DNA from: Octopus sinensis
Lineage: Eukaryota
DNA length: 64,000 bases
Assembly: GCF_006345805.1 (NCBI RefSeq)
Contig: NW_021833026.1
Coordinates: 186,001-250,000, forward strand
Direction: 5' to 3'
The first letter of the stretch is position 1; every line of letters starts with the position of its first letter. Position numbers and translations under genes: made by a program. The notes below the pieces were generated by a model, which was given only the letters and a program-made list of their open reading frames with translations, was not told the DNA's origin and searched no databases. Below, piece after piece: positions 4,582-60,232 of this stretch.

Positions 4582-5890
<1,309 letters not shown>

Positions 5891-8640: not shown

Positions 8641-8670
8641 AATATTGAAATTTAATTTTAACTAAAAACC

Positions 8671-13420: not shown

Positions 13421-14444
13421 TTAATTGATGATTTTGTTATTTAAATATTTTTTAATTGAATTTATTTTTGGTTTAATACAATATTATACACTTTTCGAGG
13501 TGGAATGATCTCTTACCAATTCAACTCAGAAGTTGACATTGAAGAAGATGATTATAACGAATTTAAATGCCACGTAAACTTTGCATCTGACGAAATGATT
13601 CTTATGCCAAATATAACCCGATCTCGAAGTTCGATCTCTCGGTACAGTCCTCATACTAATATATAGCTCATTCGCAGGCTTTCTAAACGAGGGAAGGGGC
13701 GGCACAATCCACCTGGGAATAACCGACGACGGAAGGACAGTCGGAATGCCAATGAACGAGGACAAAGTTTAAAAGTTTTCTCACATAGGCTGACCACATA
13801 TTCCTCAATATTATTGACTTGTGCAGTCGCTATAACCCACCAGTGCCCTCGTTTATGTACTCAGTTGAATTTGTGCCTGTTCTCATGCCGCACGAGGAAT
13901 GTCCCACTGTCCCTCCTTATTCTCGCGTGTATTCTCAGTGGTGTATGTTTGAGGTCGGTTACTGGCAATGAGAAGCAACATTCCTTCAGGAAGAAGACTT
14001 GTTTCTGCCACAACACCGAAGTGGAGTTGATGTCTTATTTGCAGGTAAAGAACCGATGTGTGGTGAGGCTGCACATAGCCAAGTGGGAGAACACGTTGTG
14101 TAGGGAACTTTGTCACACAAAATGTCGTCTTCCCCCTATTTACGAGAACGAGGATGGAGATGTATACATTCGAAGACTGGCTTCTGTTCAAAAGGTAGTT
14201 TGATGGATAGGAGACTGCAGATATCTCATATGGATGTGATTGCCCGCACTCAGTTTATTGTTCGAAATTTTTATGGCGACCAACTGGTCCGGTTTCCTTC
14301 TTTTTATATTTGTAGGCTTAAAAGTCTTGGAAAATAGCGTTTAGTACAATTTGATATCATTTATGTTTTTTATATTCAATAAAAGTTATTTCACCTAATT
14401 CTTTTGACGAATAAGTTTATTTTGATTAATGATAGTAACGATTG

Positions 14445-20029: not shown

Positions 20030-21600
20030 GATAAAGGTTACCAATGGAGGAACCAAATTAAACGAACCTGGGAACAAAATTCAACCAAAGGGACTAGAAG
20101 AAATCGTGAAAGAAAACGGTGGAGACCTCAGGAAAAAAGTCCATGTTCTGGACCCCCGACCTCTTAGACCAGGGGTGTCAAACTCATTTCGCTTTGAGGG
20201 CCGCATTTATAATAATTTCTCATTAAGGGAATATTAGTTCTGATATTTATTATGATGAATAACCAAAATAAGAGAAACTAAATTATTCAATCATCGCCCC
20301 TTAATTTTGGTGAGAGCTGCTTCCAGAGGATTGACATCTTTTTTTAGATACAATTTTTGATATGTCAGGCTGAGCTATTCGTGTAGTTCCGACTTTTATT
20401 AAAGAGAATAAATGTTCATCAGTTAGTCCTGTTCTTTGAGCAGTTTTTGTGCTTTTCATAAATGAAAAAAGCTGTTCACACACATATGTCGAACCAAACA
20501 TACCAATGATTTTTGTTGCAAACTTTTTAAAGTTTTTAAACTTTCCAGAAAGATATGAAAAGAAAGCAGGTATTCCAACCTCCAAATATTTAGCTTTAAG
20601 TATAGAATCTGGTTGGATTTCCAATAGTTCCATTTGTAAACTTTCATCTGCATTGGAAACATTAAAAGAGAATGGTGATGCGAATAATGAAAATTGTTGT
20701 TCAAAAGACCAAAAATCATTAAATCTTTCTTGAAATTCCTTTAACAACGATTCTAGTTGTTTTTCATACTGAGAAAAATTCATTACATTATGTGCATCAA
20801 CAGTACTCCTGATCCAAGATTGGCTTTTCATTTCGTCTGTGTTTTGCCCTTTCATCTCCATAAATAAAATTATTTCCGATCTCAACAAATAAAATCTTTT
20901 AACAACTTTGTGAAGTGATAACCAGAGGACTGGAGTATAAAAAGGAATGTCGCTGAACTGTTTACTAAACTGCCGGTGGTTGAGGGGATGACCTCTGATA
21001 TAGTTTACTGTTTTCGTGACCAAACTAATGGTATTTTCCATTTTTAATATCTTTGAGCACAAATATTGCTGATGAATAATATAATGAAAATGAGCAAATG
21101 ATGACCCGGGATTTACCTTTTCTATTTCAGTTCGCAATTTAGCGGCAACGCCAGCATGTCGTCAACCATATTCGAAGCACCATCAGTGCATAAACATACA
21201 AACTTCTTCAAATCAAACCCATATTCAAAGAGAATTTGTAGTAGTTTTATAAAGTTATCTTTACTTCTCCGTTCATCTTTCAAGCACCGTTTCTTTTTTA
21301 TTCCAGAAGAAGCACGTGACATTAACAAACACGATTTATAAATACAATTAAAAAATTTAATTAAATGTAAAAAAAATAAAAATAATTTTTTGCATTTTAT
21401 ATCCATTAAATCAGACCGCACTTATGTTTGGCAAAGTACGCTGAGGGCCGCGGGCCGCATGTTTGACACCCCTGTCTTAGACGATGCGCTGTAGAACACA
21501 AAGAAAAGCTGCGAAGGTTTCTAAAAGATGCTGGGATCACCTGAAATAGTTAATTATGGTTATGAAGGTGTTTTTGCTCCTAAATAAATAAATAAATTAG
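20030..21600 (+). mobile_element. 3' fragment of 'GIT-end' LINE interrupted by hAT
   Basis: Removing the hAT joins LDPRPLR to RCAVEHKEKLRRFLKDAGIT*, homologous to the ends of the 12307 and 47630 ORFs; followed by a (TAAA)n tail. Confidence 0.65.
20170..21474 (-). mobile_element. hAT (SPIN/GTF2IRD2-Buster type) internally deleted transposon
   Basis: TIRs CAGGGGTGTCAAAC (20170) and GTTTGACACCCCTG (21461-21474); 8-bp TSD TCTTAGAC (20162-20169, 21475-21482); ORFs with LCTDGASNM, HYIIHQQYL, FGSTYVCEQLFS. Confidence 0.95.
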
Positions 21601-21959: not shown

Positions 21960-24485
21960 CATGTTAAAACATAATGGCAACTGCTCAGACCCTCAGATCC
22001 TCGCTGAATTAGAAGATGCGTCGGATCCCTAGCTGAATACTGTTCGAAATTTTTATGGCGATATCATTTATGTGTAAATTGATTGAGAATGTCCGGATTA
22101 TTATTAACACATTCCGTAGGAACATAAACAAAGTTATAATCCCACACGTGTCACAAGCGAAACAATCTTCCGGAAAATAAGTACCGGACGCAAATCTGGA
22201 ATGGTTTCTATCATTAATGTTTATGCCCCTCAAAGTGGTAGGATTGCCAAGAATCTCGACGAACTAGACTCCTTTTACAAGAAGCGAGCCAGGACACTCA
22301 CAAGCCTGGAGGATTCGTCCACTCTATTCATCGCGCGAGACTGGAATGCCAAAGTTGGCATCCGCTCTGGGGACGAGCAGTTTATTGGCAGATATGGCCG
22401 TGGGTACAGGAACTTTCCGGGCACTCTTCTGGTCCATTTCTGTGAGACCTTTTCACTATTTTTGTGTAACACGGCTTTCTGCCACGCTGCATGACATCGG
22501 ACCACATGGACTGGAAGTAGAACAAATGGGATCGGTGAAACTACATCAATCTACAACCAAATCGATTATATTTTTTGTCGACAGGCCGATAAGGCTGCCT
22601 TATTCGACTCCCGATCATATGGAGGATCTCGGGTTGACAGTGATCATAAAATGGTCGTTGGACGTTTCAACATCAAGAAACACCATGCGCCCCTCAACGC
22701 GCGAAGACTCCCATCTGCTACAAGAAAAAGATATCTCACGGAAAAACTGTTGTACTCCTCCCTCATCCGGGAAAACTATCAAAAATCATTGGAGAGCTAT
22801 ATCTCTTGTATAGGAACGGGTCTTTCTTGTATAATCCATTATGAATGGTATCCATACGGCTGCTGACGAGTACATCTGGAAGCAACCAAATAATAATCAG
22901 TCTGGGAGATGTTGCCACCCGGATGTTCGGGTGGTAATCGTTGAGCAAAAGGATCTAAAGTTCAGAATCGAAAACAAGAACGATCATAATAACAAACAGG
23001 CACTGAAGAGGGAACGTACCAGAATACAACGACTCATTAAGAAACTAAACCGTCAGCACGAAAACAACGACTCATTAAGAAACTAAACCATAGACACTCT
23101 GGAAACCTTTCTAAACGAAATCGAAGGGCTCAAGGACAGCGCACAAATGTTTCAGGCCATGCGTTTTCTCAAAAGAAGAAAACCCATTAAACTCAAAATT
23201 ACCGATGGCATAAGAAAAACCATTTACAAACCTGCTGAGCAAGCCGAAATAATTGCTGATCACTTCGAAAATCAATTTAATCTGAACACTGACAACATTG
23301 ACCCCTTTACTTGCATATCAGCACCTCTCAATAAGCCAATCGCAGTTGAGGAGGTCATCCAAGCTTCCAAGAAGCTTAAGAATTGTCGGGCAGCTGGACC
23401 TGACAATATCGCAACCAATGACCTACTCCCACTGGGCTCAGGCACACTCATCCCGATACAAAAAGCCAACAAAACCTCCGGTCCGGTGGAAAATCTCCGT
23501 CCTGTAATACTACTAAACACTCTGAGAAAACTTTTCTCACTCGTTACACTCGGTCGCATAACCCGAACTGTTAATGAATATCTCTCCCACAGTCACAGCG
23601 GATTCAGGGCTGGAAGATCCACAGCTGATATAGTCTGGAGTCACAGATGGCGCTGCGCTGTCCAGCAAAAATTCAAAAAAGCTACGGCTATCCTTGGTAT
23701 CGATATGTCAAAGGCTTTTGACTGTATTCGTCGTGATCTACTTTCTGGGGTTCTGGAAAGCTTCCTAGAAGTGGATGAAGTGAGAATGATATGATTACTA
23801 CTTGCTAAGACAGAACTTTCTGTTTGTATTAGGTCAGTCTCCTCCAGGCGGATCAAAACGAATGTCGGCACGCCTCAAGGAGATTCTCTCCCCCCTGCTA
23901 TTTGTAATCTATCTGAAAGTCGCCTTGAGAGATTTGAAAACTTTCTATAATGATTCTATCACCGAAATTGTATATGCCGACGATGTGGACTTTGCCTCGG
24001 ACAACATAGATGATCTAATTCATCTACTAAACAATTCCCCACGGGTGCTTAACAAATGGTTCCTGATAATTAATACTTCTAAAACTGAATTGACGGAGAT
24101 AAAACGAATGGACATCAGAATTGGTGAAACACTGAGAAACGTCAACAAACTCGGCTCCCTACTTGGAGACAGTGAAGATATTTCTCGCAGAAAGATGCTT
24201 GCTACCGCGGCTCTGAGCAGAATACGTAAAAAATGGCTCCAAGCTTGGCCGATAAATCGGGCCCTCAGATCAAGGCTATATAATGCATTCGTAAAGCCTG
24301 TTCTACTATATAACTCGTCAACATGGGGGATCTCGGACACTGAACTGAAGACTATAGACTCTTTTCACCGTAAACAACTACGTATCTTACACAAATACAC
24401 TGGCCATCAAAAATTAACAATATCGGGATTACCTAATTTTTTTTCTGGCTTTGACAATGTTCTTGGTTTAAATAAATTAAATTAA
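21960..24485 (+). mobile_element. RTE-like LINE (APE endonuclease + RT), frameshifted
   Basis: INVYAP, DWNAKVG, QIDYIF, DHKMV (APE); GPDNI, NLRPVILLN, GFRAGRST, IDMSKAFD, PQGDSLSP, YADD (RT). Confidence 0.88.
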
Positions 24486-25363: not shown

Positions 25364-27116
25364 CTACAACAGTCCCTGCTTCTTCAAATCCTCATATGTC
25401 TTGCGAGTGACCACATTTCCCATCGAGTCCTCAAACTCCTCCTCAATCTCAGCCTTCCACCGATCCTTGTCCTTTTTAAGCTGTATCTTACCCCACACTG
25501 CAATTGAAAACCGAATAGTACGTTCAACCGCCTCGTTGATTTTAGTCACGTTTGCAAAATGGGACGAGTTAGGAATTCCAAGACACCGCATTCCGTGTGC
25601 ATGCCTCCACTCCTGCAATATAACAACTCCACAAACCGCAAAGTGCATTTGAAATGCTTTGGGCCCCTTATACACATAGTTTCCGCAAATCTCACACGTA
25701 TAACTCAGATTGAGTCCGTGGAGCTTATATAGCCAGTAGGGGATTGGCTTCCCGTCCCAACCGAGAGGGACGTTCTTCGGGTTGTATAGCCCTACTTCTG
25801 GCTCACAATCGTCGTCATCATCCACAACTTCTTCATGGTCTGATAGATCTTCCACCGCGTTGGACTGGGCTTGTTTTCGGTGGATGTTCTCGATCGTGGC
25901 AACTCGATGGTCTCCCAACTGCTCACACAACTCGTAGATCTGAGCCTCCACCCACGCAATCTCGGGAGGCTCATTCTCCCTGGTCCGACTGTCCATTCTC
26001 TGGTCTTTCGTCAACAGGGAGGTTGGGATCACATCTTTCCCTTTTATACTCATCAACCGGGCTGCCCTCTCTTTGACAGTCCTTACAATGAAAGGACACG
26101 AATACCCCCCACATTTGACTCCAATTGCTTTTAATGCCGACTTTAGTCTGTCTCCCCCAAGTGCCTCCAATTCTTCCACAGAGGAAAACTCATTCAGGTC
26201 AAGACGGGCTCCGGAGAACGAGAGTGCCCCAACAGTGCCTTTCTACCACTAAACCACTCTCCTCTACCTCCCATCCCGGGAACTTTTCTTCCTTCCAACT
26301 GACCTCAAACTGTCGCTGCGTGTTCTCAAACATCTACAACACAAAACAAGTCCAAACCTGAGCGTGGTCCACCAAAGGCTTAATCCTAAAGAGATATCCC
26401 TTCAGGTACTCCAGAAGTGTCGTAGAATACCTCAAATAGCCTCAAACAACCACAAACTGCTGGTACAACTTTCCCAGCTTTTTTTCTCTGGGAATGACAA
26501 AAAGTCGGTCAAATGTGCGAAGATATGTCACGTAGTCCACCACTTCGTGCAAATTGATGTACATATTGTGACATTCGTGCAAATCCAGGAATCGGCCAAA
26601 ACCCTCCTCGTCTGAGAAATTGACCAAATCTACGATCTCTCTCAAATCACTACTTTCCAAATCTCGTCCTCCGGTCATCTTTTCCATGTCTGCATAATCG
26701 GAAGAAGGAGGAATGTAGGTCTGAATGTGGGTCTGAATGTACCTTGTTGGGATTCTGTTTGTGGTAGTCCTTAATGAGTTTTAGGCGACGGTAGAACTCT
26801 GAAAACTCGTTGGGACAACTCACTGCCTTTCTTTCCTCCACTCGAGACCTGCCATTTAAAAGGGGCTCAATGACTTGTCGGCGTATAGTTCGGAAAGTTT
26901 GCTTGTTGTGTCGAAATATGACTAGAATATTGATATTGTGGATAACTTGGAGTAAAAGAGCTATTTTGTGGTCGGAGAGTATTTGGTCTTTAGCCTAAGG
27001 GAATTAGTAGTGGTTGATACGGATTTCTTTTCTTGCATCATCTCTTTAGCCATAGCTATGAAGGTACGTTCTCTTTCTTCGTGGTAAAGGCGTTGGGTTT
27101 CAAATACAGACTCCAT
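25364..27116 (-). CDS. SF3A3: Splicing factor 3A subunit 3 (Prp9/SAP61), multi-exon
   Basis: Start MESVFETQRLYHEERER; GRFLDLHECH; NPKNVPLGWDGKPIPYWLYKLHGL, CEICGN, HF.EWRHAHGMRCLGIP; ends TYEDLKKQGLL*. Confidence 0.96.
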
Positions 27117-27402: not shown

Positions 27403-28793
27403 ATGGTTTCTTGTATGCTAATCCCCTTAGAAATACAAAATAACTGGCGCACTCCAGCAATAGCACATGTTTGTAATGTATTCTCAAATATTTTTAAAAC
27501 CCCTTCATTTTCCATTCAGGTAGAGTCTATAACTTAACTGGACTAGCAATTGGAGAAAGCTGTATTGAACGATGCCTATGAAGGAGATAACCTCACCTCC
27601 TCAATAATGACTTGCCTTCTCTCTGGCATCAAGAAACGTCGAGAAACAACGTAAATCACACAAATCAGTGTAGTCGTGACAGTTGGGACTCCTCTCTTCG
27701 CCGACTGGTCCTTACTTTAAAGTCATTCAGAAAAATCAACAAGACAGAACTCCCTTCCAGCTACGAAACCCACGATTTTTACTCTCTTTCCTCATCCGAT
27801 CGTCTCTCCCTAATTTATCTACTCTGCGATCTGAGAGTGGCCAAATTGGACGCCTCCAAATACGCTTCCAAATACCCCCAGGAGTCAGATTCCAAGTTCA
27901 GGATGTCCTGCCTGGGAGAGGACTCCACCAAACACAAATATTGGCAGTTCTGTGGACGTTTATACAAAGAAGACACATTGACTCACCAATTCGAGTTGGT
28001 TTGTTCATCTTTTGGAGACTGGGAAAATTTGGCAAAGAAGTTCTGTTCTCAGAAGAAAAAAGCGAATAAAGAATTGGGAGAGCGAATTAGACTTGATTGT
28101 CTTCCCCACGTGAAGAATTGGATTAATGCCGAACTAAAGAGAACAAACCTCGAATGGGACAGAGAGAAAAAGGTTTGGAGACTATTCGAATGGCAGATCA
28201 CGACATTGAGGGATTTGGAGAGTCAAATATCACAGCAGTTGTCACAAAAGGGGATACTCAACAGGAGGAAGAAGATTGCGAATGTATATTCCTCACAATA
28301 TCACCTCGAATGTGAACGGGCAAAGGCCAGAGAAGGTTATTTTCGAGTAGGGGACAGCTAGAGAGGACTCGTCGGTGGAGAAGACGGTCGGGGATAGAGG
28401 ATGTGGAAATAGAATCAAACTACATGGGGGAAGACGAGTTAAACACGATTTACACAAATATGTTCTCTGGTTGGAGTTTAGTCTTATTTCAGTGCTCTAC
28501 GTGTTGTGTCAGTACAAATCAAATGCCATTTTTATTGAAGAATTGACTTGTTGTTTATAAAAACCCGAAATATTTTATACAAAAATATGCAGCATTTTGA
28601 ATCGGATTTTGAGAGTGTTTTTAAAGAGAGGAATGACTCTCTTGATTTGCTGACTTTGTTTCGAGAGGTGATGGAGGAATGGAAGCCGCGGTCTCCTCCC
28701 ATTGGGGAAGAGATAACGGCTCCCGAATGTGCAGAAGATGCGAGTGCTGTTCCTCCTCCAAAGAGACTGGTGGCGATTCTTGTTAATTTGTAG
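27403..28793 (+). CDS. CECR2: CECR2-like chromatin factor (DDT/WHIM regions, degenerate bromodomain-like C-terminus)
   Basis: NWRTPAIAHVCNVF (cf. WWEVPAIAHFCSLF), DRLSLIYLLCDLR, LGEDS...YWQF.GRLYKE, LVCSSFGDWENL; 27-nt intron 27520-27546. Head-to-head with SF3A3. Confidence 0.7.
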
Positions 28794-28974: not shown

Positions 28975-31900
28975 TGGAAGGGAATGTGGCACGAAAAAAA
29001 CCGACAGACTTCATAAGGTCACACCATAGGATAGGGTTAATCTTGTATGATGGTTATAAAGCGGCAAGGTTTTTGCATTCCAGAGAAGTTGATTTATTGT
29101 GTGTCGTCCGTCAAGGCAGATTGGACAGTCGGATCAACATCCTTGTCTAGTTTTTTTTGGTAGTCGAAGAGTAAAGGATGGTGCCCACAGCGAAATCTTG
29201 CAAGTTCGACCCGATCTCTAAGGCTGAGATCATTTTCATCCGTGTGCGATTGCCTAAATGAAGTTTTGTTCTCGTATATGATTTGTTAAGGCTGAGATCA
29301 TTTTCATCTCTGTATATTTTCCTTCAAGAAAGACTTTGTTAACAGTTCTTTTATGTTCGATGGTTTTTTGTTAGTGAATGCGTTTAGGATGCGATTGTAG
29401 TTCGTATTGTCGTGATATTGCTTAGATGGTTTTTGATTATACACCTAGAGGCGAAAAATTTGGTTCCATAAATGTCAAAATAGTCTGCAAGTTTAAATTG
29501 TTTTGGTTATCTGATGCATATGGTCGGTAGGAGTAGATTTCATACAACCCATAATAATTTTGAGTGTTTGGTTTAGATTTTTTTTTTTTTTAATAGGGTC
29601 AAACTACTAAGTAAAGTCAACAAACTAATAAATTCTCCCAGCGAGACGGAGGGAACAGCTGTTGCCACGCATGACAGCCAGCAGGATCCTCTGAATGAGG
29701 AAAGTAAATTCCCTAGGGTCCTTGGACCGCGAAGAACAAAGATGTCCCAATTTCTTTAGGGAAGTGAGGGTCCCGGAGCCAAAGACGCCGGAAGTCTCGA
29801 CAACGATTGGCCAAAACCAAAAGTCATCCATCAAAGACTGATATTTCCGGCACTTCGAAAGCTCAGCCTTATTAGCACGAGACCCAGCAAGAGAGGCCGA
29901 TTCGTTGATGAAAGACTTTGAGAAGGTATCCACACAAGTGGAATCCCAGACCAAAGGTCTCCCAGAATAAAACGAGAACAACGTAGAGCCGTCCGGCCTT
30001 TTCCCGTCACCACGGTCGAGACCCTTAGGCTCAAGGACAGAGGGTAGCCGGCCTTTTCGAGTGAGTCGAGAATGATTCTGTTAATCGCCGAATGGCGTGG
30101 AATACGACCCGCGCTTTTCTTGCAGGAGAGGGCATGGAGCCCGTATACGTCCATAGTAGATCCGCACCGGCAGGGGTGGGGACTACAGATCGGAAGTCCG
30201 AGGCGGAGGCAAATGCCAAAACGGAGGGCGTCGGAGTCAAGACAGGTGTCCAAATGGGTCGAAGGAAGGCAGTTAAGCCAAGAGCCAGAATGCGGTTGGC
30301 GGCTGGCACGGTAACAAGCCAGTCTGTGCTGGTTCAGGAGAGCCTCCAACGAGTCCGCATGATGCTTACTAAGAATTTTATCCCATTCACGTTGGAGGGA
30401 CCTATCAGAAGGGAACTCAAGCCCTTTTTCCTTCCAAAGCAAAAGTGCAGAATTAATATCAGAGTCCAAACGAGATCCGGGCGATTTTTCAAGAATCTTA
30501 TGGACAAGAAGATACAATCCTGAAGACGATGAAGGAAAGCGGGAAGAGAAATGTCGAGAGCCGAGCGGAGCCCAAGCCCACCAAAAGGAACAGGAAGTTT
30601 GGCCTGACGCCAACCGACATCATCGAACTTGACGTTAAAAATAATCTCGGCTTAAGAACGCACCAGAGCGTCAAAAGACTCCAAAGCAGAGGGAACAGAA
30701 AAGCAACAGGAACTCCTTAGGACATAATTGATCCTCGGAATCAAAAGAAAGTTTTTGAGGATAAAAAAAGCGGGATGGGGATCGATGTCCACAAGTTTAT
30801 CACAAAGAGAAGCAAGAGCATTTCTCTTGGAATCGAGAATACGAGAGACCGATTGGTGGTGGATCGGGGCACCCAGGATTTCAAGTTCAGAATGAGAGGT
30901 CTGCCTCAGATCGGGCAAGAGGCCATGAAACTGGGCAAAAAGGTCTTCGAAGGTGAGGTCTTCGACGTTAAGATTAACGATTTCAGATTTTAGAGAATTG
31001 ATTTCAAGACCAATAGATGACAACGCCGGGAGTAGAGATTGCAAGTCGTTTAGCAAAATGTCGGGCGGACCACCAATAGTACAGTCGTCCAAATACCAAA
31101 TATTAAGAGGGGACGCAATCCTGCGGGCGACAAAGTCCACCGAGAGGGCAAATAATAAAGGACCCAAAGGATCGCCTTGCTGTACGCCACAGGAAGACGA
31201 AATGAAAGAATCGCCAGCAACCAAGAGGCTCGGGTTACCATAAGAAAGAAAAATGAAGGGCAGCAGAGAAGGAATTCTGGCCTTGCAAACCTCAAGAAGA
31301 TGCTTTCTATTGAGCGAATTGAAAGCGTTCTTCACATCCAATTTTAATAATAACTGGGGCCGCTCTGAGAGACGAGCCGATTCAATGAAACACCGGGCAG
31401 CGTGGACCGAGGCCTCGCACCCACCAGGTACCCCCACACCCAACTGAATGGGCTGGAGTTCGTCGCTAATAGAAGGAATTACAAGCTTGCATCCGACCTT
31501 TGCAAACAAGCGACGAAAAACGTTCCCGACGGCAATAGGTCTGATGCCGCCGTCTTTCTTCCCCAAAGCAGACAGGTTCGCAGAGAAGAAGAGCAGTCTG
31601 GCATGCTCGGATATGTCCCCACGGAGAAATAGGTTACAAAGCTTGGCAATGGATTGAGAAAGACGGTTTCCAGCCTCAGCAGTATTGGAGATGAGGTCCA
31701 TTAAGTGAATGGGACGGAGACCGTCAACACCACCACTACTGTTCCCCCTGAAAGATTTCAAAGCAAACAAAAGTTGTTGGACAGATGAAGAGGCGATCGA
31801 GACCTCCTCAGGGGTCCGGGCACAAAAGGCAGGGACATCGCCAGCCGGGTGCTTGGCGCTGAGAATTTTGAGGACATCCGGGGTTATCGAACGGACGGAA

Positions 31901-33190
31901 TCGGAAGACGAAAGAATACGGACCGCAGAGCCGACATCATGCGCCATAAGGCAGGAATTGACACGTTTGCGTAAACGAATACGATTATCTTTAAGAGTAG
32001 TTGGTTCATGGGACTTGCCCAGAAGAGGAGGCAGAATGAAGGAATCCTCCATGAACTTATTAATATTTTCCTTGATGGAAGAGGAAAGGGATTTTACCGA
32101 GCCCAAGCCTTGAACTGGGGAGCCCAGGGCAAATATGGCAAGCAAAACAAACGGTTCCAATTCGGAATGGACTGAACACAAATGACTGACTCGATCAAAG
32201 CAGACAGAGCCTTCGCCGCGGAAAAACGGGCAGAACGAGGAATTCTTATAGGAATACGATAGGACGCCCGGTAATCACGAGCGAGTCTTAAGACAGACTC
32301 TGGATTAAGCAGGAAGGGGTCCGGCGAAGGGATAGGATTAGTAAAATCAGAGGACCCGGTACAGATGGCAGGAGCGAAATATGACGGGGGGAAAGAAGAG
32401 CAAGCAGAGCAAACCCATCGGGAAAGGGAAGAGGCAGATTTCTTAGAAAGCTTGATGCAGGATAAATGGAAAAAGGCATAACAACGGTCACAACGGATGG
32501 TCTTTTTCCGATTATTACGGATATTGCAAACAGAACAGACAGACATAGATATGGAAAATTAGAATTAGCAATAAATGGATTATTGGTGAGATAGAAAGAA
32601 AGAGAAAGAGGAAAAGAAAAACAAAAAAGAGAAAGGGAAGCAACAATGGATTATTGGATAGCAAATAACAATGAAAAGAAAAAGAAAAAAAGTGGTTTAG
32701 AATTGATTTTAATTTCTGGAAAAGTGTTTTTGACAACAGGGGCGCCCATGATGGACTTGCATAGTTAAATATTTGAAGAATATCTTTTTTTGTATAGGAA
32801 TGTTAGGCAGTCTTTATTTTTCAAAGTCGGTTCCTGTGAGTATCAGAGGGAATTCATGTTATATTTACATTTATAAGTCAGGTTTTCAATGTGTTGAAGA
32901 AATCACAGGTCATCTCAAGTATTTGATTTTTTGGTGTGGGAGATTTGAATTTTGTTGGGTGTGATTGTCTAAATGAAGTTTTGTTCTCGTATATGATTTT
33001 TTAGAAGAGTGGCTGATGATTTAGTTGGAGATAGAGATAGGCTGTTTAGAGTAATCCAGTTGTACAGAGTATCAATGAATGGTTAAACATGGTGACATCC
33101 GTTATTTGGACCGTGTTTAATGATTTGATCGTAATATCGTCTGCGTATAAGTACAGATATACATTTTCGGGTGGTGTAGGAATTTATTTA
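28975..33190 (-). mobile_element. Degenerate I/Jockey-like LINE (RT + C-terminal CCHC), split by CRE copy 2
   Basis: IPTPPENVYLYLYADDITI (33100-33180); NYASPSWAPLLSKTLFQKLKSILN joins across the insertion to QTLKIIMGCMKSTPTDHMHQIT; LARFRCGHHP..CP.C..H motif near 29050-29200. Confidence 0.75.
29578..32692 (-). mobile_element. CRE-like RLE retrotransposon copy 2, near full-length, PHD-RT-RLE
   Basis: ATG 32546 with PHD finger CSVC..CDRC..FHLSC..WVCSAC; GVDGLRP, KKDGGIRPIAVG, LDVKNAFN, QQGDPLGP, WYLDD, RPDG; poly(A) tail (T-run 29578-29592); TSD TGGTTTAGA at 29569-29577 and 32693-32701. Confidence 0.95.
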
Positions 33191-33703: not shown

Positions 33704-33775
33704 TCCCCGATAGTATAATGGTTAGTATGCCGCGTTGTCATCGCGGTGGCCCGGGTTCGATTCCCGGTCGGGGAG
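33704..33775 (+). tRNA. trnD-GTC: tRNA-Asp (GTC)
   Basis: 72 nt; acceptor stem TCCCCGA/TCGGGGA; anticodon arm CCGCG-TTGTCAT-CGCGG; T-loop GTTCGATTC. Confidence 0.97.
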
Positions 33776-34504: not shown

Positions 34505-36864
34505 TTAAGTAGAATGAGTCATGGTCAGACTAAAATGATTTTCCACGACTTTGCCCACAACTTTCTAAAACTAATTATAAAAAACAAAAGACTAATAAGT
34601 ATCTGTCGGCATCACAGTACATTGTTCTCAAACTTTTAAAAAGTTCCTCAAAATTGGGTCTCATTTTGGCATCCAGTTGCCAACCTTACAATTTGACTGG
34701 GTAAATACTATAAACTTATGAAAGAGTAAAAATATATCAATCGAAGCCGTTTTCGGCTGGGGAAGACGTCTTCCTCGATTCAAAAAAACTTGAATTTCAT
34801 TGCTTTGTAGATGAGCGTAAGGGATATGTCCATATGTAAAAATCTCCCACAACGTAACCCCAAAACTCCACACGTCTGACTTGTGGGAGTGTAAAGATAA
34901 CTCCAAACACTCCGGGGCCATCCATCTGACTGCAAACTGCTGGTCAGACTGCCCAATCATACCTTTCGGCCATTTTTATATAAATAATGTTTGTTCATCA
35001 TTTTTGACAGTCCAAAATCTGCTATCTTGATGTCATAATTACTATCAACTAAAACGTGTTAAAATTAATTTACGAAGGACATTTCTTGCGGCTAGATCGC
35101 AGTGGACCACCCCAATGAACTCTAAGTAGTTCATCCCCTTTAAATCACAAATATGCATCAAATACATCTGCAATTTGATAGGCCCACTTGAGCATTTGCT
35201 TTGGAGTCAAAGAGTCCCTTTCTTGCTTTATATTTTTGAGGAGACAGCCGTTTTCGCACAATTCCATTATCAGTTTGATGTTTATTGTCATGCAAATTCC
35301 GATAAGTTTGACGCAATGGCAATAGTTGGACGATACCAAAACTTTGATCTCGTTTTCAAAACCAGTAATGTCCTCCATGCAACGGGTCAGTTCTTTCACT
35401 GCGACGCTCTTTCCTTTTCCTTGACTTTTAGAGACCAACGTGGCCTTGAATGTTTGATTAGTTTTATTACTTTATATACAGTTCCAAAAGATCCTTCTCC
35501 AATCTTTTTTTGCAAAATCAAATCTTTTTCGTCAAAGGTCTGCAAGACGGACATGTCTGGGGGGATTCCGGTTTCATGCAGTAACTAGGTCAGATGTAAA
35601 GATATGATTACATGTATGTTTTCTTCATACATGACTTTCCTACGAAGATTTGTTGTAACGACAAGAATCAAAATCAAGCCAATGATCAAAAAACATGAAA
35701 TGGTAGAAACAATTCTTGGATGTAAATTTTGCAGAATTACCTCACTGTTGTCCTTGACTTGTCGTAATAGAAACAGCGGTGTGTTCGTTGGTCTTCTCCC
35801 TCACAAGCCTTACAAGTGTTATCCACTCCTTTGTAGCCGTCTCCACAATCGCTTAGACAGAGACTACTTCTGTAGTCGTGAAAGTAAGGAGCTTATGTAG
35901 AGAACATGAAGTTACGTGGACATTTCTTTACGCATTTTCCATTTAGTTCGTAGTACCCGTCATTGTTGTGCACGAGGTTCCCGTTTATGTCGGGGATTGA
36001 CATTTTCGGACAACTCTCCACACAGGAACCGTTTAGATTGTAATTCCTGCATATCTAAGGAGTGCCTGTAATGGGACTTACATTGCATTCGGAATGATTT
36101 TGACCAAAGCATCCTCCAATACACTGGTCGTGGCAGCATTCGAGAGATTCTTTACCGAAGCAGCGGTTTTCGCACTTTTTGTTGCATATAACCTTCGAAA
36201 CTATTACGTTTATGTACGAATAATGCATTTTTGACAATCATTGACGCCTGGTCCCCAACAGTGTCGTGTAAAATTTAAAATGGGGCAGTGAGAGTTGCAA
36301 AAAACAGGAACGTTGTTATTGTTTTCAAAATAGGCTTAAATATTTCTGGGAAAAATATTGTTTTAAAATATTTTAGCGTGGTCAGATGAACTCGAACATT
36401 TCCCTGCAAAATTGCTGCTAGTCTGAATAACAAAATTACCAGCGAGTTGTGGGAGTTTGAATTCTTCGAAATTTAGTGTAGAGAGGAATATAGCTTGGGA
36501 GTAATAAAGCCGTTTCCCTTCGATGACACGGAGGTTTGGAAGACTAAACGACTGTCCTGTGATTTTATAGAGCATGAGGTAGTCCCGAATCTTAAAATGT
36601 CAGTTTTTGGGCAAACTCGACTTATATTTGCTAGGAAATCCAAATTGTCGTCTTTGTTCAACTCAAGGTTGGAAAGTTCAAGAGCGCCGATAATCTCAGT
36701 ACAACCAAAATAAATTTTTTTATAGAGACTGTATTGCTTTTTGGGAGAACCAAATCTGGACTTTCCCAATTCCCAGCTTTTGCATTCTACAAACATAAAA
36801 TTTTAGATCAGACACCTTTCAAACTTACAAATGCAGCATAAAGTATTATTACATTGGCGATCAT
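34505..36864 (-). CDS. EGFR: EGFR/ErbB-like receptor tyrosine kinase with a single L domain and a single furin-like domain
   Basis: Signal MIANVIILYAAFVSLK; L domain GCTEIIGALEL..LPNLRVIEG; furin-like CCHDQCIGGC; TM IVSTISCFLIIGLILILVV; kinase IGEGSFGTVYK, VAVK, HCDLAARN, DFG, WMAPE..KSDVWSFGVTLWE. About ten short introns; 3' end inferred. Symbol denotes family likeness, not proven orthology. Confidence 0.85.
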
Positions 36865-41709: not shown

Positions 41710-44364
41710 CAGAGGTTTCCAAATGGGGAGGCGCGCCTCCCTAGGGAGGCGTTGACTCGTGTCAAGGGAGGCGCGAAAAGTATTTCAGAAACATTTTTAA
41801 AAAATTATATCTATGTAAAAACGTGACTATATTCCGATAATAAGAGTTATTAATTTAAAAATTATATTTTTTCAAAAATTTATTTAATTTATTCATGTGT
41901 TAAAAATTTTAACACATGAATAAATTCTTGAGTGGTTGCAAAAGAAAATTCACGAATAATAAAGATTTTGACGATGGTTCAAAAAATCAAAATGATTGGA
42001 ATATAATCAATACCACTCCAAAGACAAGAAAATACTTTCCATCTTACTTATTGTTAGGATTCACACGTATCTTTGTTGATTCTATGGAAAAACCCCTCTG
42101 TTTGCTTTGCCTCAAAACACTTGCAGCAGATAGTATGAGGCCATGCAAATTAAGAAGACATTTTGAAACGATGCATTCTGAACATGTCCATAAGTCTGAA
42201 GAATTTTTTAAAAGAAAATTAGAAGAGTTTGATAACCAAACGAAAAATTGTTAAAAAAACTTGTTTCTGTCTCTTCAAATGCTTTACTAGCATCGTACAA
42301 AGTTTCTTACAGGATTGCAAAATGCAAGAAACCGCACAATATCGGAGAAACTCTAGTTTTGCCAGCAGCTATCGATATGGTTGAAGCAATGTTTGGCGAA
42401 TCCTATGCAAAACAATTACAGCAAATACCGCTTGCTGATAACACAGTCGCTAGAAGAATTGATGACATATCTGAAGATCTTTGTGATCAGTTGGTTTCTC
42501 GACTACGTAACTGTAATTTTGCTATACAAGTTGATGAGGGAGCTGACATAAATAAAAATGCACATTTAATTGCATATGTCAGATATGCTGAAGAAAGTAC
42601 AATAATAGAAGATTTATTATTTCCTGAAAGGACCACAGGCAATGAAATTTTTAATATAATTGATACTTTTTTGAAGAAAACAACATAGAATGGATCAATT
42701 GTGTTGGACTTTGTACAGACGGAGCACAATAAATGTCAGGAAATAAATCTGGTTTTTAAGCTCTTGTAAAAAACAGAGCACCAGAAATTATCTGGACGCA
42801 CTGCATGCTGCACAGATCAGCACTTGTCTCAAAGAATATGAGTCCAGAACTGAACGATATTTTTGCGCAAATTACAAAAGTTATAAACTACATAAAACAC
42901 AGTCCTTTAAGAGCTAAGCTTTTTGCAAAGCTGTGTGAAGATATGGATTCAAAATACATCGCTTTTATACTATTGTGAGGTACGCTGGCTATCTCGTGCA
43001 AAAGTGATTAGAAGGGTGTTTGAACTCAAAGATCAAGTTGCAGATTTTCTTGATGAAAATGATATTGAAGATGCAAAGTGTTCAGGGATGATGACTTTAT
43101 TGTCAAATTTGCCTATTTAGTTGACATTTTTGGGAAATTGAGTATATTGAATAAATCAATGCAGGGACCACAACTACATTTATTCTCTCAAAAGGACAAA
43201 ATAAAAGCATTTATGAAAAAATTGGTATTATGGAAATCAAATATACAAAAAAATATCTATGACATGTTTCCACTTTAAAACCCTTTGCGCCATAGTGAAC
43301 ATTGAAGCAAACAAAGACATATTTGCTGAACATTTGGATGTTTGTTGAAGCATTTTGCTCACTATTTTAAAGATCTCGACTGTAAAATGTTCGAATGGAT
43401 ACAGAATCCATTTATTGATGAAGAAGATAATCAATTTGCATTGACAACTTTTGAAAAAGAAAAATTGATAGAATTGTCATGCGATACATTATTGAAACAA
43501 AAATTTGAGAGAGAACCGCTAATTTCTTTTTGGTTGAATGTAAGAACGGAATATGAAATTTTGTCGAATAAAGCAATGAAAGTTTTGTTGCCATTTGCTA
43601 CTTCATATTTATGCGAAACTGGATTTTCTGCACTAGCTGCAATTAAATCTAAATATCGAACTCGTTTAGTAGTGACTAATGAGCTAAGAGTAGCACTCTC
43701 TGCGATGACACCAAGATTTGAAAAACTTTGCGCCAAGATAGAAAAAAAATTATCTCATTAACTTTTTGTTTTAAAAAATTGTTTTTGATAAAATAATAAG
43801 GTACTTTTGTCGAAGTGGTCGCAGTTTTTTTAGGCCTTTTAAAAAATCTAATAATTTTGAGGTGGAATATATTATATTTTATTTAAGTCGCTCTATCAAT
43901 AATTTAAATATTATTAAATTTTTTACTAATTTATTTTCTAATTTTTTTAATATTATGGCGAGCATGTACCTAATATTGATATAAACTGGCACTATAGGTC
44001 ACATGGAAAATTCTGTTGGGACTTATGCAACATCAAATTCCGACAGCTCCCAATAAGTAAGGAGGATGCAGTGCATTTTCTGCAAAATATATTCAGAAAA
44101 TTCTTTGTGGATCCAACGACGGGAGTGCACACCCAGACAGTAGAACGAATGTGGGGAAGTGCAAAATGCAAGAATAAAGCTCAAAGAGGAGCTGTACTAT
44201 TTTTCACTAAAAAAATTAATTAATTTTAATTATCTTCTAAAAAAACTGCGACCACTTCGACAAATACCAATAATAATTGTATTATATTATGGAATATAAA
44301 GGGAGGCGCAAGATTGTACTTTTTCTCTAAGGGAGGCGCGTAAAAAAAAGCTTGGAAACCTCTG
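41710..44364 (+). mobile_element. hAT (Buster/ZBED8-type) transposon, near full-length, disrupted transposase
   Basis: TIRs CAGAGGTTTCCAA / TTGGAAACCTCTG; TSD CTCTAGAG (41702-41709, 44365-44372); PLCLLC..DSMRPCKL, QVDEG.D, CTDGA, HCMLHR, VRWLSRAK, FATSYLCETGFS. Confidence 0.96.
43800..44268 (+). mobile_element. Merlin (IS1595/ISXO2-like) non-autonomous element nested in the hAT
   Basis: TIRs GGTACTTTTGTCGAAGTGGTCGCAGTTTTTTTAG and its near-perfect complement ending at 44268; 8-bp TSD AATAATAA; internal FVDPTTGVHTQTVERMWGSAK. Confidence 0.88.
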
Positions 44365-46899
44365 CTCTAGAGCCCTCCTCACAACGTCATTCAGATGAGT
44401 GTGACGGGGAATTCTCCCGGCACTCTTCTTACACGACAAGGCGTGCAAGCCGTTTGACGAAATTGAGGACCCGCACCGGCAAGGGTGGGGCTGGCAGATG
44501 TCCAAACCCAATCGTAAGCTGATCCCAATCCGCAAGGATTCGTCGTCCAGTAGTAACCCCGTACTAGGAGTGGGGAGAGCTTTGAGCCAGTCACCCGTGT
44601 GCGGCTGACAGGCGCAGTTAAGGGTGGCCAGCTGGAGTTGGTCCGACTTGGAGCAAAATTTTCGTAATGTGTTCAAGCAGAGAATTTCGTCCCAGCCCCT
44701 TTGAACTGAAGGGATCGTGGGAAAATCAAGGTCGAGTGAGCACCACGTACGGCATGCAGATGAGAATTCCGAGAGCTCATTAAGTTCGAGAGAGGGAAGT
44801 AGAACTGAGCAAACGGAATTCCTGGAAGCCGACATGGATGAGAGATCAGAGTAGGGCCAGGTCCGCACAAGGCGGATCCCGATCCCCCCGAAGCGAGTTG
44901 GTAAACTGGCACGGGTAAAACCGTCACCAGTGAACCTCAAATTGAGGTGGAATGTTAGCGATTGGTGGACAGGATTATCGATTCTGGATAATGAGTCTGT
45001 GGCAGCGAAACACGGGGAGGAACGGAGAATATAGGTCAGTCTGGGGACGAAAAGAAATTCTTCAACAAGAAAAACGCAAGATGCGAGCCAAGCCCACGGA
45101 TCCGATCAGTGAGTAGTTTAATTTCGTCCCATTTAGACGATAAGGCATTTTCTATGCCTTCAGCGGAAATTGGAGAGCCCAAGATAACTAGATCGCTGGT
45201 GGGCGTTAGCCTTAACCCAACGATCAGGCTGCTGAGAGAGGAGAATGTGTTGCGGAGAGCGGCGGGGGCAAGAGAAATGTTAACGAGTTCGCATTTTTCG
45301 CCGTTAAGAGATAGTCCGATCTTGGAGAAACCGGAAGTGATTCTCTTAACGTCTTCCATAACGACCTCTGTAGGTCCACCAATCGTCACGTCGTCCAGGT
45401 ACCAGAAGTTAACAGTGGAAGAAAGGTTCCGTGCAATGTGGTCAACAGAGAGGGCAAACAGCAATGGGCCCAGTGGGTCACCCTGCTGAATGCCGCATTC
45501 TGACATGATGATCTGATCATGGATCAGAAGGCAGCTTGGGGCAGAGTATGCCAGCTTTACAATTGGGAAGAGAACGGGGCAACGTGCCGAGACCACTTCG
45601 AGCAGATGGTCCCGGCGGACGCAGTTGAATGCGTTGCTGACGTCCAGCTTCACGATGAACTTGCAGTCTTCTGGCTTTGACTGGACAAGTTGGCGAGTGC
45701 CGTGCGCGAGAATTTCGCAGGCACCTTGGACGCCGACACCGTACTGGAAAGGGAGAAACTCCAGACTCAGGGGGGGACCACCCTGCGGGACATTATCTTG
45801 GCCGAGAGTCTCCTGAAAACGTTACCGACCGCAATGGGCCTCACGCCACCATCGGCTTTCGACAGGGCAATGAGGCCAGCAGAGAAAAGAAGATCTCTGG
45901 CGACGGTTGGAATCTCGCCCGAGACAATGTGCGAACAAAGACGAGTGACAGAAGATAGCAGGTCTTTTCCGGATTCGTGGGTCAATGGGCTCAGGAGATC
46001 GCGTAGGTGGATGGGCTTTACACCGTCTATCCCGCCGCTGCTACTGGGCGCAAAAGACCCGAGAGCGGCCGAAACCTCAGACGAGGTTATCGGGTTGGAC
46101 GGAGCCGAAACTAACGTCGGTGTTGCACGGAGGTCGGTGGGAGCTTGGGGGTGTTTGCTGCGGAGTTGATTCAGGACAGCATCACACCGAGGAGCCACAG
46201 AGGAGTTGGATGAAATTGCGCGCACTGCTCCAGAGATATCGCCCTGGAGGAGTTTGCTTCGGACTGCCCGGGAAAAGCGCAACTTACAAGTGAGGTCTCA
46301 GACTATCGATTTATAGCTGTTCTTAAAGTTTCTTAGTGTAGCGTCAAAAATTTTTGTAATAAGGTACAGAAATCTAGTATTCGACAGCTGAATTAGTGGG
46401 TGTTTTTTTTCTATTTTAGTACCCTCGCTTGGAAGAAGCACTAATCTCAAAAAAGTGGAAAAGAACATTTTATGTAAAGTTAAAAAATGTGAATCTTGGC
46501 TGAAAATTCAGTCGCTAACTAACCATTTCTTGGCCATCTCAGGGGAATAAATTCTTCCTAATTTAACTTCATGGAGGAAGTCATCAATGGCGAGACTTGT
46601 CAAACTTAACTTGCTTTCTGTTTAATGACCATATAATCAAATTGGAAGTCATTCAACAATAACCGTTAACATTAGAGCAATAAATAAAATCATTGACTAC
46701 ACAGTCATTTCACCAATAAAACTCGGCACAAGCACTTATTATAGCATTAAAGGTACACTCTCAACCAAACAAAATCTACGATATATGGACTGCGATTTCA
46801 TTTTGGATTTTACTATTCAAAGGCATCGAAAATCGCATTACGTTTTCATTGATGCACGAGTCAAGTAACCATCGTTTGGAATAATTTAACAATAACAAC

Positions 46900-48651: not shown

Positions 48652-51600
48652 CGCGCGTGTTCTTGTGGTGTTTTTCCTTGTTTGTTTTTTGGTCTTTCTT
48701 GTTGTACATTCTTGTTGTGGTATCGATCTCATTCCATATCAATCTCTTTCCTTATATAATCTTTTTTCTTTTCTGTCCTTTTTTTTCACTGTTTAATTTT
48801 TGATTATTGTAAATTCTTTCATCCTATACGTTTAATGAGTTCTCTATGCTACTCGTTCAACTGTACCAATTCGCGCAAGAGGGGAAGGGTATGCTCCTCC
48901 TGCGGCAATTTTTACCACCTATCGTGTGTAGGTCTATCTAAGGCCTCATCTTCCCGTATTCCTCTATGGAGATGTCTCAATTGTCTAGAGGGTGTTGTTT
49001 TATCTAACACTTGCCTAATCGACCCTCCTAAGCCTACTCCCAGCACTCCTGCTGTCGATTCCTCGTTCAATAGTTATACATCTGCTGTCATTTTGCAATT
49101 TCTTTCGAATTTCCGTCTCTTAAAGAAGATCCCCATCAGACTGCCAAAAGGCTCACGTGCTTCAGCCGCTGAATCCCTATGCACATTGATCCGTAAAGCC
49201 ATAAATACCAACCAAAACGAGGACTGGGCCAAACTTTTCTGTTTCCCCGTATTCGCCCTGAACCTACACATTAGCAAAGGCTCTTCCGAATCCCTGACTT
49301 CGAGGCTTAAGAACTCCATCCTCTTATATCGGAATCATACTATTTCCTTTTTTCTTTCCCAGAAATATGTTTTTCCCAAAACATCGAATAACACCTCCGA
49401 ATGCAATTTCAGTAAAAGAATCCATTCCAAACTATTGGAAGGTGACTTCACTGCCGCTCTAAGAATTCTTTGCAGTAACGACTCATTTGCCTCTATTGGG
49501 GACAAGACTCTCGAGCTGTTAAGGGAAAAACATCCCGACGTTAAAAATGATCTAGAATTCCTTTCTCGTTCTCATTTTACCGAAGTTAAAAAAGTGAGCA
49601 AAGAAGAGCTCCTTTATAATCTCAAATCATTCCGACCCTCCAGTAGTGGAGGGTTAGACGGCCTTCGTCCCGGTCACATTCGCGACCTTATATCACTCAA
49701 TTCGTCTGATGCAGGTGTAAACCTAATTGATTCAATATGCGACCTGATAACCCTTTTCATCAGTGGCCATATCTCTGATTTCGCACGTTCTCTCTTCATG
49801 TCTGGAAGCCTCACCGCCCTTAATAAAAAGGACGGCGGAATTAGACCGATTTCTGTTGGGTGCACTTTTAGACGCCTTGCAGCCAAAATATTATGCAGTC
49901 GTAGCTCCCATTCCTACCCGAGCATCTTTAAAAACATCCAATTGGGTGTCGGTGTCAGAGGAGGTTGTGAAGCATCAGCCCATTCAGTCAGAGAGTTTAT
50001 TGCTTCCAAGAATGTGCCTGACAATTGTGTCATCTTGAAAATTGACATGCGAAATGCGTTTAATTCGATCGACCGTTCCTGTTTCCTTGGAGAGTGTATG
50101 ACTCAGTTACCTGAAATCATGCCGTTCGCTAAACTTTGTTACGAGCACAGTTCCAGCCTCCTTTTCGAGGGTTCAAGTATCCTCTCTTCCACCGGGGTAC
50201 AACAGGGTGATCCTCTCGGACCACTCCTTTTCGCATTGGGTATCAACCCTATAGCAATGTCAGTCAAATCTCCCCTAAACATTTGGTACTTGGACGATGT
50301 CACAATCGGTGGCCCGGCAGATCAGGTTCTCAAAGACGCCCTTATGATATCCTCTCGGCTCGGCCACATCGGGTTATCCTTGAATCCGTCAAAGTGTGAG
50401 CTGACTAATCTTAACGTGGCCTCTTTCGATGAAATCCACAGAAACTTTACCTCACTCATTCCTGAAATCAGAATAACCCAAAAAGAAGACCTTATTATTC
50501 TCGGCTCTCCGCTCCACGGTCAGGCAACGGAAAAAATTTTGATGGAAAAGACATCAAATATGGAACAAGCAGCGAGTCGGTTATCCCAGCTAGATGCACA
50601 TGAAGGCTTGTTCCTCTTGAAGAATTTTTTATCCATTCCAAAAATTCTGTATATCCTCCGTTCATCTCCATGTTTCCTTCATCCTAAACATCTTGGGTCA
50701 ATAGACTCTATCATTCGTCGTCATGCCGAACTTATTTGTAATGTGCAACTTGATGATCTCGCATGGAAACAAGCTTCCCTACCTATTCGTATGGGAGGTA
50801 TCGGTCTCCGTTCACCTACCGACTTGGCTCTTCCAGCCTATTTGGCCTCACGATCATTTTGTAGTCCCCTCATCGGCGTCATTCTCAAGTCTTTAAATGA
50901 ATGTACCCCGTGTCGGTGGATGCAAAACGGTCTCGAGTCATGGAGCAGTCATGGTCTGAGATTCCCCGAAGTGGAATCCTCACAGAGACATTGGGACGAA
51001 ATCTGGTGCAGGGAGACTTACAGAGTTATCGAACTGTGCATGGACCAAGAACGGATCATATGTCTCAGATCGGGTGCACAACCCAATTCTGGCTCCTGGA
51101 TAAGCGCTTGTCCTATTGCGTCTACCGGCTGTAAACTGGACGACGATACCATTAGGATCGGCCTATGTCTACGTCTCGGCTTACCGATGTGCACCCCACA
51201 CCCCTGCAAATGTGGAAGGACGATTGGTCCATTGGGAAGGCACCCACTTTCGTGCACTCGTAGTGCCGGTCGTTTTCCCCGACATTCCGCCGCCAATGAC
51301 ATCATCAAAAGGGCCATGGACGCTGCCGGATTCCACTCTCAACTCGAACCAGCTGGTCTCGATAAAGGGGATGGCAAACGCCCAGACGGCGTAACCATCT
51401 ACCCGTACACGAGAGGGAAATCACTTGTTTGGGATTTTACCTGCCCTGACACGTTTGGACCTTCTTCATTCGGAAGTTCGGCATCCTTTCCTGGCTCTGC
51501 TGCAAAACGTTCTGAAGAGTTGAAGAAAAAGAAATACTCTTTCCTGGCAGACAGATATCTTTTCCAGCCGATCGCTGTGGAGACTTCTGGAGTCTTTGGA
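48652..51600 (+). mobile_element. CRE-like retrotransposon copy 5: uninterrupted PHD-RT-RLE ORF from 48835, last ~35 codons missing
   Basis: PHD C..C..CSSC..YHLSC..WRCLNC; GGLDGLRPGH, KKDGGIRPISVG, IDMRNAFN, QQGDPLGP, WYLDD, CKCG..H..SC..RFPRH, RPDG, VETSGVFG, then an abrupt switch to the leader of copy 6. Confidence 0.95.
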
Positions 51601-51618
51601 AAATTGGGTGGTTTAACA

Positions 51619-54600: not shown

Positions 54601-54770
54601 ACACTCCGCTTCCTTCGCTCGCTCGACGGATTTCAAGGACTAGTCACGATCCAAGAGAGTTTTCTTGGCTCCTGGAACGTCTGTCGATTGCTGTGATCCG
54701 AGGGAACGGCTTCGCCATTCGCGAGGCCTTTAACTAACTTAGCAATCTTTAATTTCTTTCTTGCAAATAT
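51619..54770 (+). mobile_element. CRE-like retrotransposon copy 6, full-length, two single-base frameshifts (~52115, ~54620)
   Basis: PHD CSTC..CSSC..FHLSC..WDCPSC; full RT and RLE motifs; ends AVIRGNGFAIREAFN* at 54737; no poly(A) seen. Confidence 0.95.
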
Positions 54771-55439: not shown

Positions 55440-57202
<1,763 letters not shown>

Positions 57203-58880: not shown

Positions 58881-60138
<1,258 letters not shown>

Positions 60139-60232
60139 TTTAGTAATTTTACTGTCCGGTTTCTTATGTATTCTTGCATTTAAAATTCTGGTTTCTATTT
60201 TTATATTAGTCTATATATAAAACACTAAGGTG

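Follow-up and report, generated by a model that had tools for sequence, protein, structure and literature searches.

EGFR-family receptors have been described as carrying a pair of L domains in the ectodomain and no fewer than two Cys-rich regions (PMC12963305; PMC4914847). Members with just one Cys-rich domain have also been tabulated, in Amphimedon, Isodiametra, Convolutriloba, Macrostomum and Ciona (Barberan et al., 2016, PMC4914847, Table 1). Like the gene reported here, these are kinases of the EGFR clade whose extracellular Cys-rich regions number fewer than two; the entries give counts, several come from models that may be incomplete, the signal peptide being unconfirmed, and their L-domain content, tails and catalytic loops are undescribed (PMC4914847). 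The gene lies on the minus strand of a 64-kb stretch of DNA (64,000 nucleotides, hereafter called the window), between positions 34505 and 36864, and, judged from its sequence, it is a real member of the ErbB/EGFR family, from a spiralian whose introns are ultra-short. With EGFR/ErbB1, DER, LET-23 and EmER1-3 it shares the domain I-II cysteine framework and a single transmembrane (TM) helix, and with EGFR/ErbB1 and the canonical invertebrate EGFRs the length of the juxtamembrane segment and a kinase with C797 and the RYL motif, about 40% identical to that of human EGFR. Unlike canonical EGFRs, it has no domain III or IV, reads HCD in the catalytic loop, has a Met gatekeeper and Thr and His at the positions of I706 and V948, and ends in a Tyr-free tail of 20 residues, its frame being broken twice as assembled. 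The ligand-less, constitutively extended co-receptor ErbB2/HER2 would resemble it in having a permanently exposed dimerisation arm and no canonical ligand pocket, but in ErbB2 the ectodomain is complete, with all four of its domains, and the docking tail is long, whereas the present receptor would get there by deletion. Secreted ErbB isoforms, such as herstatin from ERBB2, comprise the first ectodomain subdomains only, and in this they match the domain I-II ectodomain found here; they are, however, soluble inhibitors without TM helix or kinase, while in the present gene domains I-II are joined straight to both.

The splice model of the gene was built by hand and with a script. It runs from an ATG at 36864, with an in-frame stop 9 nt upstream, to a stop codon at 34507-34505, an AATAAA poly(A) signal (34425-34420) lying 80 nt 3' of the latter, and comprises 15 exons (36864-36816, 36786-36617, 36590-36440, 36414-36227, 36200-36082, 36054-35916, 35891-35741, 35714-35612, 35584-35471, 35444-35166, 35137-35074, 35048-34963, 34936-34714, 34684-34593 and 34564-34505; minus strand, as are all features given below) split by very short introns (24-29 nt). 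Twelve of these introns are GT-AG (24-29 nt), one is GC-AG (26 nt) and one is a TT-AG segment (29 nt), GT/GC-AG ends being thus found in 13 of the 14; the conceptual product, of 662 aa, was reached with one placeholder base and the TT-AG intron. The GC-AG intron (36201..36226) yields CQK|FSKVIC, spaced as in EGFR CQKLTKIIC. A 17-nt GT-AG alternative at CQKC| was dropped, since the 26-nt intron reproduces the EGFR spacing and gives a higher Pfam score for the Furin-like domain (67.8 versus 62.3 bits). The introns at GTVYK|, QIAD|G and GRK|F seem to coincide with the human exon 18/19, 20/21 and 21/22 boundaries.

The predicted layout of the product is a reduced one: a signal peptide precedes L1 and CR1, a linker of 11 residues connects these to the TM helix, and the juxtamembrane segment, the kinase and a tail of 20 residues make up the rest. 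The start codon and putative signal peptide MIANVIILYAAFVSLK (36817..36864) form a hydrophobic N-terminus, and the ECKSW that comes next aligns to the first mature EGFR residues. They are followed by a receptor L domain (domain I; residues 44-133, 36386..36706, with two introns inside; PF01030, 42.6-43.9 bits, E-value 7.5e-11 in the conceptual product) and a Furin-like Cys-rich domain (domain II; residues 163-312, 35773..36299; PF00757, with the match covering residues 163 to about 308 at 67.8 bits, E-value 1.3e-18 with the GC-AG intron and 6e-17 with the 17-nt alternative) in which the cysteines are spaced as in EGFR C166-C309. These domain matches, like that of the kinase, greatly exceed what chance would give. 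In the comparison with PDB sequences the ectodomain aligned to human EGFR 29-335, that is, domains I-II, with CLSDCGDGYKGVDNTCKACEG falling on the last modules and the end of domain II and one further cysteine, C312, after it. Its 24 cysteines fit the EGFR domain I-II framework; according to our own reading of the alignment, the C133-C163 pair of EGFR has been lost jointly and all other domain I-II cysteines are retained. Four N-glycosylation sequons are present. The module equivalent to the domain II dimerisation arm, CPKMSIPDINGNLVHNNDGYYELNGKC (35932..36012, aligned to EGFR C240-C267), has 27 residues between its cysteines versus 28 in EGFR, and the tip residues are not conserved. Between the last domain II cysteine and the TM helix there are just 11 residues, FYYDKSRTTVR; this linker, a 26-nt intron (35740-35715) and the helix IVSTISCFLIIGLILILVV occupy 35657..35772, and the helix (residues 324-342) is the single strong hydrophobic one, with a Kyte-Doolittle maximum of 3.0.

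The order of signal, one L domain, furin-like region ending in CLSDCGDGYKGVDNTCKACEG and TM helix, which an initial sequence-only reading of this DNA had proposed, is therefore borne out by Pfam, the EGFR alignment and hydropathy, and the search with domain HMMs that it had advised recovered the L domain, the Furin-like domain and the tyrosine kinase. Its statement that the ectodomain contains only domains I-II was also upheld by the alignment to EGFR 29-335 and by the searches: Pfam found neither a second L domain nor FnIII domains in the conceptual product, and no domain III/IV-like sequence was detected across the 64 kb by tblastn with full-length ErbB1 and ErbB3 types. The gene encodes one region of each kind, against the pair of L domains and the two or more Cys-rich regions of an ErbB. 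The paralogue and EGF ligand that the same reading had suggested looking for were not encountered, as the 64-kb window holds neither a tandem ErbB paralogue (tblastn) nor an EGF-like ligand gene or motif.

The juxtamembrane segment (35519..35656) aligns residue for residue to EGFR 678-711, with Y352 within VMYEENI, and leads into an ErbB-type tyrosine kinase domain (residues 380-642, 34596..35518; PF07714, 267 bits), the Pfam PK_Tyr_Ser-Thr match covering residues 383-634 with an E-value of 1.5e-79. The identity of the gene as a member of the EGFR/ErbB family, as first read, is supported by this score and by the fact that the 60 best distinct PDB sequences are every one EGFR, ErbB2, ErbB3 or ErbB4; the kinase alone scores 225-230 bits against the best of them. 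Residues 344-646 align without gaps to EGFR 674-980, including juxtamembrane segment, kinase and RYL motif. The residues equivalent to EGFR K745, E762, D837, N842, DFG, E884, R958 and the ErbB-typical C797 are retained, so that all catalytic residues are kept save the HRD arginine. The gatekeeper, equivalent to EGFR T790 in the alignment, is Met (35265..35267), which is common in active kinases. At the asymmetric-dimer positions I941 is kept, M945 is replaced by Leu, I706 by Thr and V948 by His; mutation of I706 or V948 in EGFR breaks the asymmetric dimer, and the activation mechanism of the present kinase may differ from that of EGFR. The C-terminal tail LKVVGKVVENHFSLTMTHST, with a 28-nt intron (34592-34565) and the stop codon, lies at 34505..34595. 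It has 20 residues after the RYL motif and no Tyr, in agreement with the early reading of an end about 20 aa past the kinase fold and no long docking tail, the AATAAA following 80 nt on.

The catalytic loop reads HCDLAARN instead of HRDLAARN, as had been noticed at the outset, with codons CAC TGC GAT; the TGC of Cys501 (35101-35099), at the position of EGFR R836, is one transition away from CGC. With no Arg before the catalytic Asp, this is a kinase of the non-RD class (Dardick and Ronald), in which the plant receptor kinases FLS2 and XA21 read HCD; non-RD status is unusual among tyrosine kinases. FLS2, XA21 and the human EGFR variant R836C share the same change of Arg to Cys before the catalytic Asp. 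Among 393 fetched proteins HCDLAARN occurs in only three kinases, none of them an ErbB, and the ErbB-like proteins in that set all read HRD or HRN. HCDLAARNVL is printed for planarian Smed-EGFR-5 in a supplement alignment, according to a noisy machine reading of it (PMC4914847). A full-text literature search found no papers mentioning HCDLAARN. No close relative emerged when the 93-aa kinase exon was used in a full HMMER search (best match 62.8 bits, 28% identity), a word-indexed search with the whole conceptual protein returned just three distant matches, and no exact match to the 99-aa kinase ORF is on record in public assemblies. The features of this gene are nonetheless less unprecedented than the sequence-only reading implied, because EGFRs with one Cys-rich domain (PMC4914847, Table 1) and R836C, which makes the same HRD-to-HCD change and occurs as a viable human germline variant (PMC8637204), had already been reported.

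As assembled, the gene does not have an intact coding sequence. The spliced sequence consists of three blocks (153, 507 and 58 codons) split by two -1 frame breaks, and the early reading, which implied a single spliced frame, had read across both (at about 36323/36322 and 34714/34713); of its assignment of 34505-36864 to an ErbB gene, the anatomy stands and the continuous coding sequence does not. Break 1 (36322..36323) follows ...FKPILK (TTG AAA), with a -1 shift into NNNVPVFCNSHC, and sits in the exon that ends the L domain, where one A added in the GAAAAC run would mend the frame. Among canonical introns just one bypasses this break, a GT-AG intron of 105 nt (36439-36335), and it takes away the last L-domain rung, AILQGNVRVHLTTLKYFKTIFFPEIFKPILK; the Pfam score of the L domain is 43.9 bits with this rung versus 35.9 without it. 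Break 2 (34685..34713) coincides with 29 nt that look like an intron, TTATAG...TTGTAAG, whose acceptor is AG and whose donor is TT. Excision of 34713-34685 yields IDIFLLFHK-C-WQLDAKMRP, colinear with EGFR IDVYMIMVKCWMIDADSRP, and a canonical bypass exists only in the form of an 83-nt intron (34767-34685), at the cost of LPQPKTASIDIFLLFHKC (helix alpha-H). An exhaustive search gave no GT/GC-AG intron that mends either break without loss of conserved sequence.

Three housekeeping genes elsewhere in the window served as controls. They encode phosphoglucomutase (PGM), with 4 introns, SRP receptor alpha, with 6 or more junctions, and SF3A3, with 7, giving at least 17 junctions over about 1,650 codons. 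They showed zero frame breaks, and every junction tested in them had a canonical solution of 19-40 nt. Since neither the control genes nor the LINE ORFs of the window, which are intact over 943 and 1,023 codons, have such defects, the two breaks are specific to the ErbB-type gene, or at least local. Within the gene, no in-frame stop is found in the 718 codons of the three blocks, and the 507-codon middle block remains open over ten exons, for which the chance probability is about 3e-16.

The source of the DNA bears on how these breaks are to be read. Introns shorter than 30 nt are reported to be known in just two animal groups, dicyemids and myxobolid myxozoans (PMC13644364). LINE and hAT elements abound in the window, whose GC content is 38%; in the genome of Dicyema japonicum GC stands at 36.7% and repeats, many of them LINEs, at 49% (PMC6736024). 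The PGM in the window has its best named relatives in a brachiopod, nemerteans and a mollusc (54-57% identity). From these sequence characters, the ErbB-type gene is most probably that of a dicyemid parasite. A myxozoan origin is unlikely, considering that cnidarians have no EGFR (PMC4914847), that the GC content of the window is unlike the 29% of Henneguya (PMC13644364) and that the best named relatives of the PGM are those given above. The octopus host is, by intron sizes, also an unlikely source of the window. The published D. japonicum assembly was made by merging Illumina and PacBio RS II contigs; the animals sequenced had been pooled, and heterozygosity was 1.24% (PMC6736024). If that assembly is the source of this DNA, residual indels or a null allele are plausible.

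The retention of the architecture, the ErbB identity, the catalytic residues, the cysteine pairs and a long stop-free frame indicates that the reduced ErbB form was kept by purifying selection until very recently, and hence that the breaks would be consensus errors or a null allele, or else reflect a very recent inactivation. We give an even chance to a functional gene in the living animal, in which case the breaks would go back to errors in the consensus or to a null allele, the sample being pooled and heterozygous; against it, there are two frame-disrupting defects in 662 codons and zero in the controls. The Thr and His at the I706 and V948 positions, the unconserved tip of the arm and the lack of an EGF-like ligand gene in the window also count against it. 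That same contrast of two lesions here with none in the three control genes favours a fresh, fixed pseudogene, or a gene being lost in a shrinking genome, in which the 1-nt deletion and the destroyed donor are both real, and we consider this a serious possibility, if below an even chance. It would fit with the donor lesion being in a 29-nt segment that has a good acceptor and typical length, as a mutated intron would look, with the change from CGC to TGC being a single CpG-type transition, with surroundings rich in LINE and hAT elements and containing duplicated aspartic-protease fragments, and with dicyemids having the fewest signalling genes among the spiralians compared (PMC6736024). However, the blocks of 153, 507 and 58 codons contain no in-frame stop (about 3e-16 for the middle one), 13 of the 14 splice-site pairs are intact and the catalytic residues, besides the HRD Arg, and the paired cysteines are all retained, so that any inactivation would have to be extremely recent and the reduced architecture itself selected; furthermore, indel errors could take the place of real lesions if the assembly is the published D. 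japonicum one (PMC6736024). Under the pseudogene account, the HRD Arg-to-Cys change, and possibly the loss of domains III-IV and of the tail, are assigned to the same decay.

Other explanations together leave at most a small share. Two longer introns, 36439-36335 (105 nt) and 34767-34685 (83 nt), are both GT-AG and restore one frame, and the gene could be functional as assembled through them, making a protein without the last L-domain rung and helix alpha-H. Yet the segments that would be skipped are open, show clear homology to EGFR and increase the profile scores, helix alpha-H belongs to the kinase core, and 83-105 nt far exceeds the 22-42 nt of nearly all other modelled junctions, which makes such splicing quite improbable. 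We see even less room for a canonical four-domain EGFR whose domain III-IV exons were lost by assembly collapse or mis-join, the caveat raised in the sequence-only reading. The published D. japonicum assembly, if it is the source, is a merged hybrid (PMC6736024), which would allow for such an artefact, but the end of domain II and the linker are in one contiguous exon, the TM junction after the 26-nt intron is phase-correct, and the window contains no N, that is, no gaps, and no L2/CR2-like sequence. Least credible of all is a different receptor kinase with L domain and furin-like region, for instance one of the insulin-receptor family: these regions are common to both families (PMC12963305), but the best 60 PDB sequences are all ErbB and none is InsR, the alignment with EGFR extends to the juxtamembrane segment, C797 and the RYL motif, and neither the L1-CR-L2 plus FnIII arrangement nor an InsR-type kinase is present, FnIII domains being absent.

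If the gene is intact, its product would be a type I membrane kinase with an ectodomain that ends where domain II does. The lack of domain III would mean no bipartite EGF pocket and that of domain IV no tether; with both missing, the domain II arm would be permanently exposed, and dimerisation would be expected to come from density-driven homodimers or from pairing with another ErbB, not from ligand clamping. Activation of ErbB kinases is allosteric and takes place within an asymmetric dimer, and EGFR needs no activation-loop phosphorylation, for which reason the loss of the HRD arginine could be tolerable and need not kill the kinase. Given that the tail has no tyrosines, signal output might proceed via the juxtamembrane Y352, the activation-loop tyrosines (Y531, Y533), the tail of a partner or direct substrates. 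The untethered, ligand-independent or co-receptor function that the initial reading put forward may follow from this architecture, but it is weakened by the two frame-disrupting defects, given that these may mean a dead gene or unreliable base calling in this region. That a living dicyemid uses a minimal ErbB with domains I-II, a non-RD kinase and no docking tail is a tentative and rather doubtful proposition.

Should the gene be expressed with its frame intact, nature would have supplied a minimal ErbB, the smallest module of this kind that works, and evolution would have run its own deletion test of ligand clamp, tether, HRD arginine and docking tail. Such a receptor would represent ErbB signalling without the domain I/III clamp, the II/IV tether or tail phosphotyrosines, and growth-factor signalling pared down in one of the simplest animals, made of a few dozen cells. 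If instead the lesions are real, the locus would capture the moment at which EGFR signalling is lost in a reducing genome. Either way, a model of the ErbB-type gene has to be curated by hand, since introns as short as 24-29 nt, one of them GC-AG, and the two breaks will be mishandled by automatic predictors.

In the four genes of the window whose splicing was modelled, introns of 19-42 nt account for nearly every junction, with examples at 55674-55702, 56543-56568, 17813-17840, 18129-18151 and 26267-26243. The splice sites modelled in these four genes comprised approximately 30 GT-AG pairs, one GC-AG pair and one TT donor, the latter at an intron-like segment of the EGFR-like gene. Reports of such an ultra-short intron regime are limited to dicyemids and myxobolid myxozoans (PMC13644364), and the introns of the window fit this regime.

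Canonical splice solutions were obtained for three housekeeping genes of the window. The phosphoglucomutase-1 gene (55440-57199, plus strand) is intact and encodes 547 aa, with four introns of 24-40 nt, all of them GT-AG, and its best named relatives are from Lingula, nemerteans and a mollusc (54-57% identity). In the gene for the SRP receptor alpha subunit (16900-18812, plus strand), a canonical solution, including one intron of 23 nt, was obtained at all junctions with defined exons on both sides; where the first N-terminal exon ends, the splicing could not be narrowed to one model. All seven junctions of SF3A3 (SF3a60/Prp9; 25367-27110, minus strand) were canonical, with introns of 22-27 nt; two of these, each of 24 nt, keep the frame and contain no stop, so that the sequence is open whether or not they are removed. 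A 256-codon ORF without a Pfam match (27591-28358, plus strand) adjoins SF3A3, and a ribosomal protein L13e ORF was identified by Pfam at 2520-3038 (minus strand; 180 bits).

A large part of the window consists of numerous non-LTR retrotransposon copies (8662-10131, 12310-13440, 22120-24482, 29628-32802, 44290-46297, 48760-51828 and 51865-54693), with RVT_1 ORFs of up to 1,023 codons and a GC content higher than that of the genes; such sequence is found 1.7 kb from the EGFR-like gene, on its downstream side. Among three hAT-like transposase ORFs, those at 847-1975 (plus strand) and 20304-21421 (minus strand) were recognised only by eye, while that at 41913-43758 (plus strand) gave a weak Dimer_Tnp_hAT match.

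Cathepsin-D-like aspartic protease loci are present at 4400-5920 and 7385-8059 (both minus strand) and at 58900-60220 (plus strand). The middle one contains two similar IPPIQQMR...GLI(D/N)RS segments in different frames and resembles duplicated partial copies, which may be pseudogene fragments.

Rfam and ARAGORN searches over the window gave no match except a tRNA-Asp (GTC) at 33704-33775 (plus strand), 730 nt downstream of the EGFR-like gene. A tandem repeat at 63477-63998, open in several frames, encodes a Lys/Glu-rich unit of 26 aa (…EKLTEKKTTDKGGRLQEVKKQKK…).
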